A DNA stretch of 64,000 bases, taken from Perkinsus chesapeaki ATCC PRA-425 (lineage: Eukaryota > Protista > Perkinsozoa). The number at the start of each line of letters is the position of its first letter. Position 1 is the first letter of the stretch. The notes below the pieces were generated by a model, which ran no database searches, was not told the origin of the DNA, and saw only the letters and a list, made by a program, of their open reading frames with translations. The stretch lies in assembly GCA_013115145.1 (NCBI GenBank), contig JAAPAO010000009.1, forward strand, positions 1-64,000. The letters run 5' to 3'. The position numbers were made by a program, and so were the translations under genes. Positions 35,855 to 46,855 of the stretch are shown piece by piece.

Positions 35855-36519
35855 ATGTTAACTTCGCTACAGATGCAGTTTCGAGAAAGATAGGAATGGA
35901 ACCGAGAGACGAGATAGCGGTTTCAAATATTTGGGAAGTAACTTCGAACATGTGTATTCAGAGAAGATATTATAGCGTTGACACGGCTCTAGTGTTTGAC
36001 GACGGCAGAATGATGCTGAAAACGGGGATGGAGACTGTAGAGGCTATCGATGAGTAAAATGATCTTACTAAGTTCCCCGTTCGTGCGTAGAGGCAGAAGA
36101 GGCTTACTATCCTTTAAATAACATGGAGTTATTGATAATCATATTATAGCCAGGACTCCCTTTCACATGTTAGCCTCCTATAAACCTTCGCTAAGAATAC
36201 TACTACCCGACTCTTTAATTGTGGACCATTAGGAAAGGATGAGAGCCGAAACTTGAATGGGTAGGTTGCGAGTGATGAATATAGAGAAACGCTCGCTCTA
36301 AACCTCGATATAAAGATTATTTGTATCGAGTGACCGACAATCATGCGCACTATAATTCATGCTTAGCATTCATGCGATATCCACTTATTCTCTTACCATA
36401 TTACTTGGTATCTCAACTGATGGTCTTATGTGCCTGCCAGTGACGGCCAACCCTGCTCTTGTCTTGCTGGAACTACAGTCTATTACGACTGGACAGGCGG
36501 AGGTGGAGCCATTGTACAT
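35855..36519. repeat. Segmental duplicate block B, including intact actin-like exon-1 copy D on the minus strand (36405-36519)
   Basis: Matches 30626-31108 apart from a ~175-bp extra segment (36189-36364) bounded by CTT microhomology. Confidence 0.9.
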
Positions 36520-36652: not shown

Positions 36653-39600
36653 TTAAAATGGGACCAGTCTGTTAGGATTGACCCTCTCAATATCCGAGAA
36701 TGAGAACGACTTGCTCTCTGATGATGACACTACAAGTGTCTGCTTTGATGGGGCGTCCTTGCGCGGATGATTAGCGTTGCCTCCAGAATAGGCCAGCACC
36801 GACGGGTCCAGCTCCACTCGACTGTACTCAGGCTGCCACATAGCATCCTGTATCAATTTACCGATATCATCAGGAGGACTGAAGGAGAGTTACGACCCTC
36901 GGGAAAAGCATTGATCACCACCTTATCTGCGCAATGCCCGTATCGAGAGCCTCCTTGACGCAGGCTACAGCAATGGCATGGGAGAGCTCACGAATCCTGT
37001 CTATTTGGGGGTACAAGAGGCCTTGGGCCAGATCCTACAGAGCCAGGCTGATTTTTACTATAAATTTTCCGTTAGATCCTACCGTTTCAGTAACCTTCTC
37101 GGAGAGGGTCTTGGCCGCCAGGTAGAACATAGTATCGGGGATGCTTTTGAACTTGCCCACAATTGCGGCCAGACCAACTCCGGGGAAGATGTACCTGAGC
37201 TTGTGTGAACCACGCAAGTTCGATCCCTGCCACCGACATGTTGTTGCCTTGTCCAGGAATGTAAGTCTTGCCGTTAAAAGAGACGGGCTTGAAGGGTGAG
37301 CCAGTGGCGACCCATGCCTCACCGTTGGTCCACCTAACGCGACCAGTGCCCCAATAACAAAGCGCCGGCGCTAACATGTAAAGTTGCTCTGGCGTAGCCT
37401 CGGCCTTAGGCGTCGGGTTCGACAAGGCGAAAATGACCGGTGCTGGACAGTGCGAGTGCATTTCCTGAGGAAAAGGTATATCCCGGAATCCCCAAGTCTG
37501 CATGATGATACTTTGATGATTTCCTCCGTGAGCGTACCAAACTGTCCACTGAGACCTAGCAGAACCGTAGGCTTCACAACTTGAACAACTTCTAGGAGAC
37601 TGTGGAGAGGCTCGTCATCTCTACAGAACCGGACCTAACACACGACCAAGAGTCGGGCCGCCCGTTCTCGAAGGGCGGAGAGTCGAGTTCCGTGACCAGT
37701 ATTGCAATTCTCTACAGCGGCCTGTATAGCGGCACTACACGATTATTCAAGGTAGGTAAAGCAGTTTGAGGTAACATGAACGCCTTGGATGACAATAGCG
37801 ACCAAGAGTGATAATGTACTAAGCCTGATGGTAATAGGCAGTTGAAATATCATCTGCAAAGGCACGGAAGCTATCACGGGAAAGACTTTCGATTGCCGCA
37901 CAGCGAAATTCTCAACGGAGTTACGACTAAGCGCTGAATGCGTTGCCTTCCTATCTTATATTAGAAAGGAAGCTACCTTGTGCTCTTGCAGCTCTCCGGG
38001 CCTTTTCGAGGTGACAAGCCCTCTGGAATCAACCAGCCAGAACCGCTGTCTGGCCTCCTCGATGGTAAGACCTTGCTGAACCATGGCCGCCACAATGCAA
38101 TCGGCCACTCCCACAGCGGCGGATCCGGCACCGAAGAAGACAATGCGCTGGTCAGCGAGAACCTCGTGCTTGGCCCTCATGGCCGTGAGAAGGCCGGCAA
38201 GGGCCACGGAACCCGTGCCCTGGATATCGTCGTTGAAGCATAGGATCTGATCCCTGTAGCGCTGCAGCAGAGGGAAGGCATGATCGTTGGTGAAGTCCTC
38301 AAACTGGATCAGGACGCCGGGCCAACGAGATCGAACAGCATCGACGAACTCGTCAACAACGGCGTAGTACTCCTCGCCGGTGATTCTGTTGTGACGCTCA
38401 CCGAGGTAGAAAGGATCACCGAGAAGGTCCTGGTTGTTGGTACCGATATCGATGACAACAGGTACAGTACGTCCAGGGTTAATACCAGCACAGGCAACAT
38501 AAAGGGAAAGCTTACCAATAGGGATGCCCATACCATTCGTACCAAGATCACCCAATCCAAGAATACGAGAACCATCGGTTACAACGATAATATCGGCATC
38601 ACGGACATTGCTGTTCCATACGACTTGTTTGAAGTTGCCTTTTTCAGAGAGATTGAAGTAGATACCGCGGGAGCCCCTAAATATTCTATCAAAGTCCTTA
38701 CAAGCCTCCCCAACAGACGGTGTGTAGACTATCGGCATCAAACGGGTAATGTTATCGAGCAGCAGACGGAAGTACAAGGTCTCGTTCCTATTGTGAACCC
38801 CCTCCAAGTAGATATAGCGGCCAATGTCAGTGTCCTTAGTATCCAACTGCTTGAGACATCTTTGCACTTGCACATCAATATCGAGCACCTTCGGCGGCAG
38901 TAACCCTACGAGACCTAGCTCTTCCCTTTCGACCTCGGTGAAGGCCTCGGCTTTGTTATATACCGGGTTTCTCATGAGGTGAAGGCCTCTCTCGTAGACA
39001 GTAGCCACCTTGCCCGACTCAGGACCAGATAATCTCACGCCCGGAGTGTTCATTGGATCGATGACGCCCATTTGGATTTGAAGCAGGACTTGTCTGGCCG
39101 AGTTAAGAAAAGCATCTCGAACCCGCTGTCCGGCCTTGGCGGAGGTCTCCATGAACAGAATGCCATTTGATCTAGCAAAGGTGGCGGCCTCCTCAGCAGG
39201 AACTTCACGACCGAGAAGATCGGCCTTGTTACCGATAAGAACCTTGGTGACGTTCTTGTTGAGAGTTGGTAGATTTTCCTTTATAAACTCGATAAGCTCC
39301 TCGTAGGTTTTACGCTGTCCGACGTCGTAAACAAAAAAGATAACGGCGGAGCCTCTGCAGTAGGACGCGGTGAACTTGCCCCACACAGTGTCCCAAATCT
39401 GCAGCTTCACTCTGTTCTCGTCTAGATTGATAATCGTCTTTGAAAACTCCACACAGTCGGTCGGAGTCGAGCTCACCCTAAAGACATTCTCGGTAAACAT
39501 CAACCTCAGATTCGTCTTCCCGACCCCGGGTGGGCCTACTAGGGCATACTGGAGGGCATGAGTCCAACGATGGAGGTGCGGCGAGGCGCTCTGGCGATGG

Positions 39601-39749
39601 TAGAGCTCAGCCAGGACCAAGTGGTACCATTCAATAAGGGCCTCGGTCGGCGCAGCGGCCACTATGTCGTCCATAGGTAGCATGCGAACATCAAAGTTGG
39701 CTTTACTGCCATTGGCAGCACCTTGCTGAACCACATTGATTGAGGGCAT
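36653..39749 (-). CDS. Rab2-like GTPase domain-malic enzyme fusion protein, copy 1
   Basis: One 597-codon uninterrupted frame contains [19 protein letters not shown] and ETSAK, then [47 protein letters not shown] and GAGSAAVG. Later short exons give [24 protein letters not shown] and MWQPEY. Confidence 0.9.
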
Positions 39750-40390
39750 ATCAGCCTTAACTTATACTCTAAAAGAAGACCGCGGAATAATGTTATATAT
39801 ACCACGAGAGACCCGAAAGAGCCGTGATTTGAAGGAAATATGGTACAAAAAACTCCTCGCGGCGGAGCTTCGAGCTACCTATAGTTATGACAACGCTTCC
39901 CGCTAGACATGCTTCACAGATACATCCTTAAGCATGTTCAAGGCACTAAATAGTCTTGACAAGATCATCTGCTTCTTCAAGTGCGCCACAGCGCAGCATT
40001 TCCCGAGGATGGCCACCGCCTTTAATTGAACTACTCAAATCAATAACGGTAATGACGAGTCTGAATATAAACTTAACACATCACGAGGTTGTCACTATTG
40101 CATCTCGACTCCGAAAAAATCAACTCAGGTTCCGAGGAGCCGCTGCCGTCCGCCGACCTTTTAGGCCGCAAAACAGCGACAGATTAGAAAAGAGAGGATC
40201 CATGGGTCGCTGTGACCGTCGAACAGGAAGTCTATCGAAATCCTACCCGAGACGGAAAGTGACCATAAAGTTGCCAAACAGAGGACGCGCAAGGGCGAAG
40301 AGGATGCGCCTTACGGCTAGGCAGTGCAGTAGAGTTAAGCTTAGAAAAAACGTGCCTTGAATGGTATTATGGTAGTATCAGTTACGCTGT

Positions 40391-43181
40391 CTACATGAAC
40401 TGGCTTGGGTTCACTCTCTCCATATCGGTGAACGAGAAGGCCTTGTTCTGAATGGTACCAACACTGAGCTTAGTTTTATCCTGACTAGGACCAACACCAG
40501 AGCCTTGGCCGGAGAAGGCGAAGACTGAGGGGTCCAACTCAGTGTGGGCGTATTCGGGCTGCCACATGTGATCCCAGACGAACTTGTCAAGATCGTCAGG
40601 TCGCCTAAAAAAGTGAAATTACGCACAACATAGTAGTAGTGAAAAGCTCACTTGATGCAGGCGATGCCGAGATCGAATGCCTCCTTGATGCATGCCACCG
40701 CAATGTCGTGAGAAAGTTCACGGATACGAGTGAGCTGAGGGTACAAAGTGCCGTGAGAGATATCCTCTGGGGTGACTCTCTCGGCAAGAGTCTTGGCGGC
40801 AGTGTAGAACATCGAATCAGGGATCCACTTGAACTTGCCAACAATACCGGCAAGACCGACACCAGGGAAGATGTACCTGATGAGAGACAAATAAATGGAC
40901 TAGAGATAAGGAGACGTCGCCCTACATGTTATTGCCCTGACCGGCCTTGTAGACCTTGCCATTGTAAGTAACAGGTCCGAAGGGGGAGCCGGTGCACACC
41001 CAAGCCTTACCCTCGGTCCACCTGAAGGGAGAATGAAATACAAGTCAACAACCAAGAGGAGTGACGGCTTACGTATAGAGCTGCTCGGGAGTTGCCTCGG
41101 CCTTCGGTGTGGGGTTGGAAAGAGCGAAGATGATTGGCTCTGGGCAGTTAGCGTACATTGCCTGAGAACCGAATACACAAATGTCTATCAGCACCTTTTA
41201 GCTACCTTAACAACGTCCTCAGTGAAGGAGCCAGATTGTCCACTAAGACCAAGAAGGACAGTGGGCTTGACACTCTTGACCACCTCGAGGAGGCTGGTCA
41301 TAGGCTCCTCGTCATCGCGGCAATAGGGAACCTGGAATAAGACTTAATCACTATCGAAAAGTCTTGAGCAAGTCTCACCTTATGGTCCTGCATAGTGCCA
41401 CCGCGCTTCCACGTAACAAGGCCCTTGGAATCGACGAACCAGAAACGCTTCCTGGCGTCCTCGGGCGTAAGACCATCATGAACCATGGCAGCAACAATGC
41501 AGTCGGCAATACCAATAGCAGCAGCACCGGCACCGAGGAAGACGATTCTCTGGTCCTCCAACTTCTCCTTCTTAACCTTCATAGCGCTCACAATACCGGC
41601 GAGAGCGACGGAACCAGTTCCCTGGATATCATCGTTGAAACATAGCATGCTCTCCTGATAACGCTTGAGAAGAGGGAAGGCATGATCGTTGGTGAAGTCC
41701 TCGAACTGGATCAGGACGCCGGGCCAACGAGACTTCACGGCATCGACAAACTCGTCAACAACGGCGTAGTACTCCTCACCATTGATCCTGCTGTGACGCT
41801 CACCGAGATACATGTCATCACCGAGAAGGTCCTGGTTGTTGGTACCGATATCGATAACAACAGGTACAGTACGTCCAGGGTTAATACCAGCACAGGCAAC
41901 ATAAAGGGAAAGCTTACCAATAGGGATGCCCATACCATTCGTACCAAGATCACCCAATCCAAGAATACGAGAACCATCGGTTACAACGATAATATCGGCA
42001 TCACGAACGGGACTGTTCCAAACCATCTGCTTGAAATTGCCTTTCTCGGATAAGTTGAAGTAAAGGCCGCGAGCGTTACGGAAGATATGACCGAACATCT
42101 GGCAAGCCTTACCGACCACAGGAGTGTAGACAATGGGCATCATCTCAGTAATATGGTCACAAAGCAACTTGAAGTAAAGAGTCTCGTTCCTGTCATGCAG
42201 ACTCTCCAAGTAAATGTACTTCTCAATATCATTGGAGTTCTGCAAGAACTGCTGATAGCACCTTCTGGACTGGACGTCGAGATCGAGCACCTTAGGAGGC
42301 AGGAGACCGACCAGACCAAGATCTTCACGCTCACTGTCGGTGAATGCTTCAGCCTTGTTAACAACTGAATTACGGAGAAGGTTGCTGCCGCGCTCGGTGA
42401 CAGTTTGAACCTTTCCGTCATTCCGGCCAGCAGAGCGGATACCCTTGGTGGCGTTGGGGTCTATCATGCCCATCTGGAGCTGCAAGAGTACTTGCCTGGC
42501 AGAGTTGAAGAAGCAGTCTCTGACATGAAGGCCGCTCTTGGCAGAGGTCTCCATGAACAACAAACCGTTCTCGCGGGCAAAACTGGCGGCTTCCTCAGCG
42601 GTCACTTCACGGCCGAGCAAATCAGCCTTGTTGCCGATAAGAACCTTAGTAGTAGATCTGTCGAGTGAGGGAAGAGTGTCATTGATGAACTTGACCAATT
42701 CGTCGTAGGTATCACGCCTTGTGAGATCATATACGAAGAATATGATAGCTGCACCATGGCAATATGAAGAGGTGTACTTGCCCCAGACAGTATCCCACAT
42801 CTGAAGCTTCAGTCTCTCATTGTCGATGTTGACAATGGTCTTGGAGAATTCGACACCCTTAGTAGGAGTTGAGGCAACCCGGAAAACATTCTCAGTAAAC
42901 ATGAGTCTTAGATTAGTCTTTCCCACACCAGAGGGGCCAACGAGGGCATACTGGAGGGAATAGGACCAATCGTGGAGATGGCGAGAGGTAGTCTGTCGCT
43001 GGTAGAGCTCAGAAGTGAGAAGATGGTACCACTCAATCAGAGCCTCAGTGGGAGCCGCGGCGACAATATCCTGCATAGGTAGCAGGCGCACATCAAAGTT
43101 GGCCTTGCAGTTGACCGTCTGAACGCGGGTAGGCACAGAGAGCGATGCTGATGCAGACTTCTTAACAGTATTAGATGCCAT
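40391..43181 (-). CDS. Rab2-like GTPase domain-malic enzyme fusion protein, copy 2
   Basis: One 627-codon uninterrupted frame contains [22 protein letters not shown] and ETSAK, then all malic enzyme core motifs ([13 protein letters not shown]). Later exons give [24 protein letters not shown] and end ERVNPSQFM*. Confidence 0.9.
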
Positions 43182-44309: not shown

Positions 44310-44505
44310 GCAGCCTAAGGCTTTTAAGAAGGGCTAAGTTACCATTGAAGACCTCGTTTCCGGTTCCCGTACTTTGGTTAAGTCGGTCAATTGCTCGATG
44401 AACTTCTGTGTAGGTTTCGAGTGTGTTTGGTTATTTTCGAGCAATCACCGCCGTCGGCGTGCCTGTCTGTCTAGTCAACCTCCTTACTTGATACTATTCC
44501 GCATT

Positions 44506-46855
44506 ATGGAGAAATCTAATCTCATTGTTAACTACCTCCCGTCGCACATTCAAGAGGGTGACCTTGCCGAGATGTTCGAGCCTTTCGGGGCCTATCAGTC
44601 TGTTAAAATCGTAACGCTCTTCCACCTCGGCAGTTCCCCGTCTCTCGGGCCTTCTCAGGTCCGGGATAAGAATACCGGGATGTCCATGGGCTTCGGTTTC
44701 GTCAACTTCGAAGAGAACGCCTCCGCTGAGGCGGCTGTTAAGGAGCTCAATGGTCTGGAGCTGCCGCAGCATCCTGGCTCATGGCGAGGGCCTGGGTAGC
44801 CCGAGGTGTTCTTTGCACTGCTGAGTTGGTGGCATCAGATCTAAGCCGATGAAAAAGATAAAGGTGAGCATCGCAAGACCCGCTTGGAAGGCCAACATTC
44901 ACAGCAACCTGTAAGAACGAGCAGGTCGTCCGAGGTTAGTACGCGAGCTTGGAAGATACGTCGCTAACATCCCGCCAGAGTACGACGCCGAGCAAATTCG
45001 GGCGTTGTTTGGACCGGTCTATGGGCCGCAAATTGAGCACCTCAGAATGCTCAGAGACAACAGCGGCGGTAAAGTCCCTCCCGGTAACTAGGCCGTGGAA
45101 TTGAACACTGGAATGTTGCGTTTCAGAGCTGAACGACGAGGAGGATACAGGTTCTAATAACAGAGGCAAATTCAGAGGGATAGCGGTGATCAGGCAAGCC
45201 GATTTCAGTCGGCAAGGCGTTTCCGAATCCTCCCGGCGCAGGTTCGATACCGAGGAGAATGCTACTGCCGCTATGGAGAAGTTCAACGGGACTTGTGTAA
45301 GGCACCTCATCGAGTAGTTGAAGCATCTCGTCCTCCAGGTACCGGACATGCCGGAGTCTCACCCTGCACTGCAAATCAAACCATGGCGGCCTGAGTTCCG
45401 AGCTGACAGGGTGCCGCAGGGTAAGGCAGTTGGATATTCTAAGCAGAACTCCAGAGTAGCTGCCAAGGCCTGGGTCTGCTCGCTATGTAATTTTTAGGGG
45501 TCCTCCTCAAGCGATCAGACCAATCGGTCGGGCGAGGCGCACGGGTAAGCTCTGATGCGCTTGCCTTTCTATTGTAATAATATCTCAGTCGATCAAGAAG
45601 GAGCACTGCAAGCCGCTCGTCTGGTAAGACGACTGTCAGTGACCGTTGGGGATGCCCCGTCACTAGGCACAAGCGCGGCCTTGGCGGCGGCGTTGGGAGC
45701 CGGCGCAGCGGCCACTCAAGAGGCCGCCAATAAAAGCGGTAAAGCTTCTAGCAATAATCGAAAATGGGTCAAAGGAGTTCCTAAATTACCAATTGATGTC
45801 GGAGTTACTCTTACGAACGGTGCTTGATATATATCCTGCAGAGCGGTGCGATGGAGGAGTCCCCGTGGGCGGCGGCGTTAGATCCCAGCGATAGGAGCTG
45901 CCGGCCTTCGGCAAGAAGCCGCTTTTCTGGGTAGCATGGTGATTTAGTCACAACGGCCAGATGTTTTGATGTCTCGCAGTCGTTCAAGCTCCAAAAGGGC
46001 GACTGCCAGCCACGATGAAGGTTTACAGAGAGCGACTATTGATGGGATCAGCATCCTTCGGCCTTCCCAGTACTGCCCGCCTAGTGGACGCCCTCATTTC
46101 GCGTTTCAGACTGCCCATCGCCCCTGCAAGCGATGAGGCTGCAGCCCCTGGAAGGGGGGCTGTCAACGAATCTACCGCGTCGCCATCGACTAGTCATTGC
46201 TCGCTACCTTGCCGCGATTGTCAGTATCACCACAGCTACTGCGGGGCAGCACAAGCTCCTCCTGTTGTTAATAGTGTTGTCCTTCCCGGGCATTACCCGA
46301 ACGGTAGGTAAGCTTCGCTTATTAAGCCTCATAGAGATAGCAGGTGCAGCCGGAACATCAGCATACTGTACACCTATCAAACAAGCATCGCGGGTACGTT
46401 AACTATTGGAATCTCATCAAGTAGTCGTCTCAGGCTGCATTCGAAACCCCCGGTAGAGATGCTCCTTCTGTCATTGCTCCGATTACGATATCACCACAGC
46501 TAGAACACGGCATGAAAACCCTTTTCTATGACCAACCGGGTAAGTCGACAATTTCGGGATGATATCGTCATACGAGCTGCTAGGTATCGTTTCTTCTAGC
46601 GTGCAGATCGGTCCCGACAGGAGCTGGGGTTGTGCAAGTTTCAGTAGTCTTGGAGACGCCGAGCATGCCGTTCGGTCTCTCTACGGTGCGAACTTGTTCG
46701 CTTCAATACGGCATAGTTGTAATCTAGGCGCTCAAGTGGCAGATGGTATGAAGCTCTGCGTGGAGCTTTTCCCTTATTCGAGCCAGTTCGACAACACCGC
46801 CAGTGTTCATCAATTTAAAAGGGCATCATCCTCACCAGTTCCCACGCCTTGTTGA
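44506..46855 (+). CDS. ELAV/Sex-lethal-like multi-RRM RNA-binding protein, multi-exon
   Basis: SNLIVNYLP (RNP2); VRDKNTGMSMGFGFVNF (RNP1); AVKELNGL; IKVSIARP; further RRM-like exons at ~44960-45300 and ~46450-46790. The 3' end is approximate. Confidence 0.8.

Follow-up and report, generated by a model that had tools for sequence, protein, structure and literature searches.

Small GTPases of the Rab family are regarded as switches of membrane traffic, and malic enzymes as soluble enzymes under the control of small metabolites. In the bacterial hybrid malic enzymes of the MaeB type, an appended and inactive phosphotransacetylase (PTA) domain senses acetyl-CoA and controls the enzyme allosterically (PMC7902834). 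Here we describe a tandem pair of genes from the protist Perkinsus chesapeaki ATCC PRA-425 in which a Rab-type GTPase domain (G domain) is joined in frame to a malic enzyme. Both lie on the reverse strand of the window that was analyzed, the first 64,000 nucleotides (nt) of contig JAAPAO010000009.1 (assembly GCA_013115145.1), and both encode proteins for which GenBank and UniProt give only the name "Malic enzyme." Perkinsus species cause serious disease of oysters and clams.

By analogy, the MaeB hybrids resemble the Perkinsus fusion in that a malic enzyme carries a domain from another enzyme family, the catalysis of which would have been lost. The extra domain of MaeB, however, is C-terminal and PTA-like, in a hexameric ring, whereas that of Perkinsus is N-terminal and Rab-like, with a guanine nucleotide as its presumed ligand and a putative role in regulation. 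The enzyme cores also differ, that of Perkinsus being of the large type (~560 amino acids [aa]; 523.6 bits against the Escherichia coli NAD-dependent malic enzyme, 6ags) and not of the MaeB type. No Pfam PTA domain was found in the Perkinsus proteins, in which the C-terminal tail (46 aa in copy 1) is disordered.

The Perkinsus G domain shares with Rab2, Rab4, and Rab14 the fold, the P-loop, the switch-I Thr, the NKxD and SAK motifs, the hydrophobic triad, KLQIW, and the pattern Q.G..D....G[IV] that follows helix alpha5. It departs from them in a deletion within switch II, in the lack of RabF3 and of a hypervariable tail or prenyl Cys, and in having a 60-aa N-terminal extension and a covalent enzyme partner. 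PseudoGTPases, or GTPase-deficient small G proteins, include Rnd, RhoH, and Rab24. Like the Perkinsus domain, they have a Ras fold without catalytic residues, and their presumed mode of action is through binding and not through a nucleotide cycle, but they are free-standing or occur in signaling proteins, and none is known to be fused to an enzyme of central carbon metabolism; nucleotide binding by the Perkinsus domain is predicted from its motifs.

G domains also occur inside multidomain proteins. In ROCO proteins, such as LRRK2, a Roc G domain and a kinase share one chain, and the large Rabs (Rab44, Rab45, and Rab46) resemble the Perkinsus fusion in the same way, by placing a Ras-superfamily G domain among other domains. 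Pfam Roc also scores on the Perkinsus G domain, and among long proteins, the G-domain search matched no others except those of the RASEF type. In these systems, however, the partners are a kinase or COR, or else EF-hand and coiled-coil regions, and the large Rabs have a C-terminal Rab with a prenyl site and an intact switch II. We regard the Perkinsus fusion as a new variant of a presumably regulated malic enzyme and a new context for a Rab-derived pseudo-switch. With its remodeled switch II, it is a natural experiment in which a GTPase fold is reused for regulation or docking in metabolism, and through it a central step of metabolism may be coupled to the levels of guanine nucleotides.

A Rab-fold domain joined to a malic enzyme within one exon

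The two genes (Table 1) are 71% identical in protein sequence and share one layout: an N-terminal extension that is conserved and predicted to be helical, then a G domain with the Rab fold, a linker of ~24 aa, a full malic enzyme, and a conserved C-terminal tail. The translation of copy 1 is letter-for-letter that of GenBank KAF4677703.1, which was recovered by protein search, and the homology-guided model of copy 2 was later found to be identical to the adjacent entry, KAF4677704.1. These models agree with the coordinates and the description of tandem fusion genes given in an initial annotation of this DNA. Ras, malic, and Malic_M are present in each protein, and the claim of that annotation that two diverged paralogs both keep the fusion also holds.

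In both copies, one exon without a stop codon encodes the G domain together with the linker and ~340 residues from the start of the malic enzyme, and the junction therefore involves no splice choice. The corresponding open reading frames (ORFs) span 37956-39749 in copy 1 (597 aa) and 41298-43181 in copy 2 (627 aa), both on the minus strand. Each is a single unbroken frame that contains Pfam Ras (aa 69-221, E = 3e-35 in copy 1; aa 79-231, E = 1.6e-34 in copy 2), Pfam malic (~1e-70 on both; 3.5e-69 in copy 1), and the start of Malic_M. The in-frame run from GTPase to malic enzyme that had been reported is thus present in both genes, and the fusion is confirmed.

Support in DNA comes from contigs of two separate studies (X3; X4 and X5), in which introns and intergenic DNA are retained. 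The copy 1 junction is fully crossed by an X3 contig (38574-41700) and by an X4/X5 contig (38688-39231), and that of copy 2 by an X3 contig (41976-43300). A further X4/X5 contig at copy 2 (42396-42594) starts at the malic enzyme-side edge of the linker and extends through it over the last part of the G domain. Contigs from two studies are therefore colinear with the window across the junction in copy 1 and across most of that in copy 2, showing that there is no misassembly. An assembly or gene-prediction artifact, the latter of which the initial annotation had argued against, is refuted at the DNA level by this coverage, and it is further opposed by the absence of an intron at the junction and by the recurrence of the architecture in independent assemblies of three species. 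No evidence in its favor was found, and the chance that it accounts for the fusion is negligible.

The same fusion occurs in Perkinsus olseni (P0282, 853 aa; P0285; P0291) and Perkinsus marinus (P0290). It is hidden in the models annotated as "malic enzyme, putative" in P. marinus ATCC 50983, which are 642 aa and 579 aa long. The model on GG685506.1 starts at an internal Met (METSAK, in G5) because the contig ends there; within positions 1-400, the frame is open upstream of the annotated Met to the end of the contig, through G4 (NKAD).

Outside Perkinsus, the combination of Ras and malic domains was found neither in word-index searches with the G-domain region (restricted to long proteins) or with the junction region, nor among 1.84 billion cluster representatives searched exhaustively with HMMER, nor in the Pfam domain column of the malic enzyme protein search. 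The ESM Atlas contained no cluster with this architecture, and a metagenome scan with the patterns MFTENVF and Q[MI]WDTVW yielded no fusion. Literature searches returned no description of a Rab- or GTPase-malic enzyme fusion or of a Perkinsus malic enzyme. The architecture is real, conserved, and, as far as searched, undescribed and confined to Perkinsus, in line with the earlier statement that no described fusion of this kind was known; in these searches, the combination is not a common one. Two metagenome matches (L003 and L004) were rejected as fusions and are ordinary Rabs, and "WDTVW" appears in L004 because the translation reads into an intron.

Table 1. Features of the tandem fusion genes, with positions in the window
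Feature	Position	Strand	Basis and remarks
Copy 1 gene, 843 aa, 7 exons	36653..39749	-	Exact spliced mapping; KAF4677703.1, Perkinsus chesapeaki
Copy 1 N-terminal extension, aa 1-61	39567..39749	-	Alignments, AF2
Copy 1 Rab-fold G domain, aa 62-228	39066..39566	-	Pfam Ras, AF2, Foldseek, PDB phmmer
Copy 1 shortened switch II WDTVWGK, aa 119-125	39375..39395	-	HMMER alignment to Rab2B/Rab14; 40-sequence alignment
Copy 1 linker, aa 229-252	38994..39065	-	Alignments; low pLDDT; from Rab alpha5 to first malic enzyme motif
Copy 1 malic enzyme part, aa 253 to ~797, exons 1-7	36794..38993	-	Pfam malic and Malic_M, motifs
Copy 1 C-terminal tail, aa 798-843, disordered	36653..36793	-	pLDDT <50; past last conserved malic enzyme columns
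Copy 1 gene-conversion tract, malic enzyme catalytic domain	38415..38618	-	Partner 41817-42020; 6 mismatches/204 nt
Copy 2 gene, 850 aa, 6 exons	40391..43181	-	Homology-guided splice model; KAF4677704.1
Copy 2 Rab-fold G domain, aa 72-238	42468..42968	-	Pfam Ras, alignments; identical WDTVWGK switch II
Copy 2 linker, aa 239-262	42396..42467	-	Alignment
Copy 2 gene-conversion tract	41817..42020	-	Partner 38415-38618 in copy 1

The G domain and its shortened switch II

An AlphaFold2 (AF2) model of the G domain, made from an alignment that included 35 free Rabs, has a predicted local distance difference test score (pLDDT) of >90 over residues 61-240. Foldseek matched this model to Rab14, Rab4a, Rab11, and Rab2 with TM scores of 0.87-0.91 (E ~1e-18). 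The best phmmer matches of the domain in the Protein Data Bank (PDB) were Rab2B (126 bits), Rab14, Rab2A, and Rab4B, with Rab11 scoring lower (~102 bits). The motifs of guanine-nucleotide and Mg binding are invariant in 5 Perkinsus sequences, including G1 (GP[PS]GVGKT), the Thr of switch I (within [PRT]Txx V[ED]F), G4 (GNKADL), and G5 (ETSAK), and the tail after alpha5 (QMG[VM]IDP...G[IV]R) is of the Rab2/4/14 type.

In a tree of Rabs, the Perkinsus domains group together as a single clade (support, 100/100) whose stem is as long as 1.37 substitutions per site, and they have no resolved sister, so that "Rab2/4/14-like" is a statement of similarity and not a placement. The Rab2/4/14 pattern claimed in the initial annotation is consequently a matter of similarity ranking and does not extend to the tree. 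The separate trees for each domain that it had proposed unite the Perkinsus G domains in one clade and resolve the clades of the malic enzyme copies, but they do not resolve a Rab sister.

The same annotation called the GTPase fold complete. A Rab fold is indeed recovered by Pfam, AF2, and Foldseek, but a deletion of four residues had been overlooked: switch II is reduced from WDTAGQESFRSIT to WDTV----WGKFT. Neither register of the alignment retains the gamma-phosphate Gly of the DxxG motif or the catalytic Gln. This shortened form is invariant (5/5 Perkinsus sequences), and WDTVWGK is unique in a comparison with the 149 nearest G-domain cluster representatives. Loss of these two hydrolysis residues is the mark of a pseudoGTPase, and on its sequence the Perkinsus domain would belong to that class.

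Other Rab features are kept in part. By eye, RabF2 (KLQ[IM]W) and RabF5 (FVYD) are retained, RabF1 (xVEF) and RabF4 (YC[RH]G) are partial, and RabF3 (RFRSIT) is gone, these motifs being reportedly as defined by Pereira-Leal and Seabra. The hypervariable tail of Rabs is replaced by the linker into the malic enzyme, and the last 10 residues of either copy contain no Cys, while the free Rabs in the alignment carry a terminal CC or CxC; the prenylated Cys tail is thus missing, as had been anticipated. Inspection of both proteins by eye revealed no peroxisomal targeting signal of either type (PTS1 or PTS2), no signal peptide, and no Gly2 myristoylation site. Given the loss in switch II and the lack of a lipid anchor, a GTP/GDP cycle driven by exchange factors for guanine nucleotides (GEFs) and GTPase-activating proteins (GAPs) is unlikely, as is Rab-style membrane cycling. 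Canonical Rab behavior as a whole, with exchange and hydrolysis under GEFs and GAPs, extraction by GDP dissociation inhibitor (GDI), and prenyl anchoring, appears unlikely from these motifs.

The same features bear on whether the domain is a targeting module, that is, a Rab-like address tag that would bring the malic enzyme to a membrane or organelle through a Rab effector, its nucleotide state deciding the location. Such a role would be consistent with retention of the Rab hydrophobic triad (Phe102, Trp119, and Tyr130) and of the RabF2- and RabF5-like motifs, and with the fact that the nearest relatives, Rab2, Rab4, and Rab14, are trafficking Rabs. Yet there is neither a C-terminal Cys for prenylation nor a Gly2 for myristoylation, and the regions central to the binding of effectors, GEFs, GAPs, and GDI (switch II and RabF3) are truncated in a domain that sits on a long divergent branch. 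We consider targeting an unlikely function for it.

Selection on the fusion and age of the duplication

Between the copy 2 orthologs of P. chesapeaki and P. olseni, the ratio of nonsynonymous to synonymous substitution rates (dN/dS) is 0.05 in the G domain, 0.03 in the N-terminal extension, and 0.04 in the malic enzyme, with 0.47 in the linker. By this comparison of sequences, purifying selection on the G domain is strong, indicating that the domain is translated and constrained. Since a constrained G domain is followed by no stop before the malic enzyme, translation from the conserved 5' start must give the fusion.

These values also bear on the view that the G domain is a decaying passenger, without function, on an ordinary malic enzyme. 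The damage to switch II would fit this view, as would one P. olseni assembly in which the copy 1 allele is broken within the G domain by a 3-kb element with terminal inverted repeats (TIRs) and two frame changes. However, dN/dS in the G domain is as low as in the malic enzyme part, which brings the passenger reading close to refutation. Moreover, G1, G2, G4, G5, and WDTVWGK do not vary between the paralogs, even though synonymous sites have reached saturation between them, and the fold is predicted at high pLDDT; a passenger is very improbable.

Within the malic enzyme tree, copy 1 of P. chesapeaki forms a clade with P. olseni (support, 100/100), and copy 2 forms another with P. olseni and two P. 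marinus sequences (100/99). The existence of separate copy 1 and copy 2 clades indicates that the duplication predates the three species. Gene order on P. olseni JABANP010000016.1 is an RRM gene, copy 2, copy 1, and an actin-like gene, and matching ORFs are present in the window. The paralogs have exchanged sequence in one tract of the malic enzyme catalytic domain, where third-position identity is 0.95-0.97, versus ~0.4 elsewhere, and where the few mismatches (Table 1) contrast with roughly 30-40% mismatch elsewhere. The short-read contigs end at this gene-conversion tract.

The broken P. olseni allele is found in assembly GCA_013115135.1, where a 3,039-bp insertion occupies JABANP010000016.1:11829-14867, within the G-domain exon of the copy 1 ortholog. 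Perfect TIRs of 135 nt are present at both ends of the insertion, and none of the ORFs of the element matched a Pfam family. The two frame changes lie upstream of the insertion, at ~11470 and ~11586, and the gene is annotated as two models, a 147-aa "Ras" and a 638-aa "malic." In another P. olseni isolate (P0291), the stretch hit by the insertion is intact.

The malic enzyme part

In the full-length proteins, both malic (232.7-238.3 bits) and Malic_M (~330 bits) score above the Pfam gathering thresholds. The catalytic Tyr and Lys, the metal ligands, and the Rossmann glycines noted in the initial annotation are all present, in the motifs IVYTP, GKL, FEDF, NDD, and GAG(S/A)AA of both copies. These are invariant across a 51-sequence alignment of malic enzymes, the invariant positions being Y342, K413, E484, D485, D507, D508, and G540-A544. 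The enzyme core is modeled by AF2 at a pLDDT of ~90, and solved malic enzymes in the PDB match the copy 1 enzyme part at 1e-147 to 1e-156. The malic enzyme part is thus complete, with its catalytic and ligand residues intact, and is probably active.

The highest similarities are to bacterial enzymes. NAD-dependent malic enzymes of uncultured bacteria (SAR324, Marinimicrobia, Armatimonadetes, and Fidelibacterota) score 690-717 bits at ~55-60% identity, compared with 495-525 bits for the solved plant, animal, and E. coli enzymes with the same query. In a small malic enzyme tree, rooted on a single long-branch eukaryote and thinly sampled among eukaryotes, the Perkinsus sequences are nested among bacterial ones. 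These comparisons suggest a bacterial origin, or lateral acquisition, of the malic enzyme part (36653-38993 in copy 1 and 40391-42395 in copy 2). Because the fusion is specific to Perkinsus and its enzyme part appears closest to bacterial enzymes, it could be used to mark the lineage or to act selectively on the metabolism of the parasite. Genome editing of P. marinus with CRISPR/Cas9 has reportedly been described.

A EukProt transcriptome protein of 1022 aa from another eukaryote (P0003), ~47% identical to the Perkinsus malic enzyme, contains two complete malic enzymes in tandem within one ORF and could represent a polyprotein-like arrangement.

A proposed action in cis and the remaining alternatives

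The explanation that we favor, with moderate confidence, is a single polypeptide in which a nucleotide-binding but noncycling derivative of a Rab acts in cis on a probably active malic enzyme. To judge from its motifs, the G domain would still bind GTP or GDP but would neither hydrolyze nor cycle as a Rab does, and it would act in cis on the malic enzyme oligomer. It might do so as an allosteric guanine-nucleotide sensor for the enzyme, much as the inactive PTA domain senses acetyl-CoA in the bacterial hybrids, or it might offer a fixed surface to which a partner docks, possibly the C-terminal motif of the enzyme itself. The initial annotation had proposed a malic enzyme regulated by guanine nucleotides or targeted to a membrane or effector, a putative function that has to be corrected for the loss in switch II. 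A more specific form of the sensor model is tentative and, on balance, doubtful: GTP/GDP occupancy, perhaps acting through SKxFSFxDxERVNP, would gate the enzyme and set the flux from malate to pyruvate, with the two paralogs serving two compartments. If true, this would be the first small-GTPase module to control an enzyme of central carbon metabolism allosterically within one polypeptide.

Several points weigh against the favored explanation. Neither copy was found in searches of RNA sequencing runs, which is an absence of data and not of transcript, and two small RNA-labeled P. chesapeaki runs gave zero contigs at the locus. Nucleotide binding, the lack of hydrolysis, and an effect on the malic enzyme are read from motifs only, and the compartment idea derives from N-terminal composition alone. 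The full-length AF2 model provides no usable domain packing and places the G domain at a pLDDT of <50, because only 5 alignment rows cover that domain; free Rabs were omitted from this alignment since they aligned onto the malic enzyme part. Finally, a conserved in-frame Met at the end of the G domain (QMG[VM]IDP, aa 228) could allow an additional isoform that consists of the malic enzyme only.

This boundary Met, conserved in 5/5 sequences, bears as well on the alternative that the gene yields mainly separate products. Spliced-leader trans-splicing occurs in Perkinsus, and trans-splicing at an internal site, or translation that starts internally (Met228 being one candidate), would release a free malic enzyme, a free Rab-like protein, or both; RNA evidence speaks neither way. 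In that case, the long ORF would reflect the annotation and not the working protein. Separate products are hard to reconcile with the absence of any stop codon or frameshift between the two parts in both paralogs and in three species, despite saturated synonymous sites, and with the exchange of the Rab tail and its Cys motif for a short linker that runs straight into the first malic enzyme motif. A free G domain from the fusion mRNA would, in addition, need a stop codon, and none exists. We judge separate products to be quite unlikely. Among the four rival explanations, only targeting and separate products stay open.

Flanking segments of the proteins

Within the N-terminal extension of copy 1, residues 16-61 are conserved between the paralogs and are predicted to form two helices (residues 26-32 and 35-55), with modest confidence (AF2 pLDDT, 57-74). 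The extreme N termini differ. In the copy 2 orthologs, the first 25-28 aa are basic, lack acidic residues, and abound in Ser, Thr, and Ala, and the first 15 residues of copy 1 include no Lys or Arg. Owing to this difference, the paralogs may differ in location, and it is conceivable, with low confidence, that they occupy different compartments.

The first conserved malic enzyme motif after the linker is RG..L[ML]RNP..NK. At the other end of the protein, the tail of copy 2 (40391-40530) is disordered like that of copy 1. Two motifs in this region are conserved in 6 Perkinsus sequences. SK[SA]FSF[ST]D[IM]ER[VI]NP, with which the tail closes, has no known match, and ELDPSV[LF]A[YF]SG shares positions with the last ordered residues of the malic enzyme. 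The first of these could interact with the G domain in cis or be subject to phospho-regulation.

Exon structure and neighboring genes

The exons of copy 1 lie at 39749-37977, 37634-37512, 37464-37376, 37333-37238, 37194-37083, 37034-36922, and 36878-36653, and its introns, all GT-AG, are 342, 47, 42, 43, 48, and 43 nt long. Those of copy 2 lie at 43181-41379, 41331-41206, 41161-41073, 41021-40926, 40876-40652, and 40604-40391. The copies differ most in intron 1, which is 342 nt in copy 1 (37635-37976) versus 47 nt in copy 2 (41332-41378). Copy 2 also lacks the intron that divides exons 5 and 6 of copy 1, and the remaining introns are 42-51 nt. Downstream of copy 1 is an actin-related gene on the same strand (36385-36519, minus strand), and upstream of copy 2, on the opposite strand, is the RRM gene (44374-44799, plus strand).

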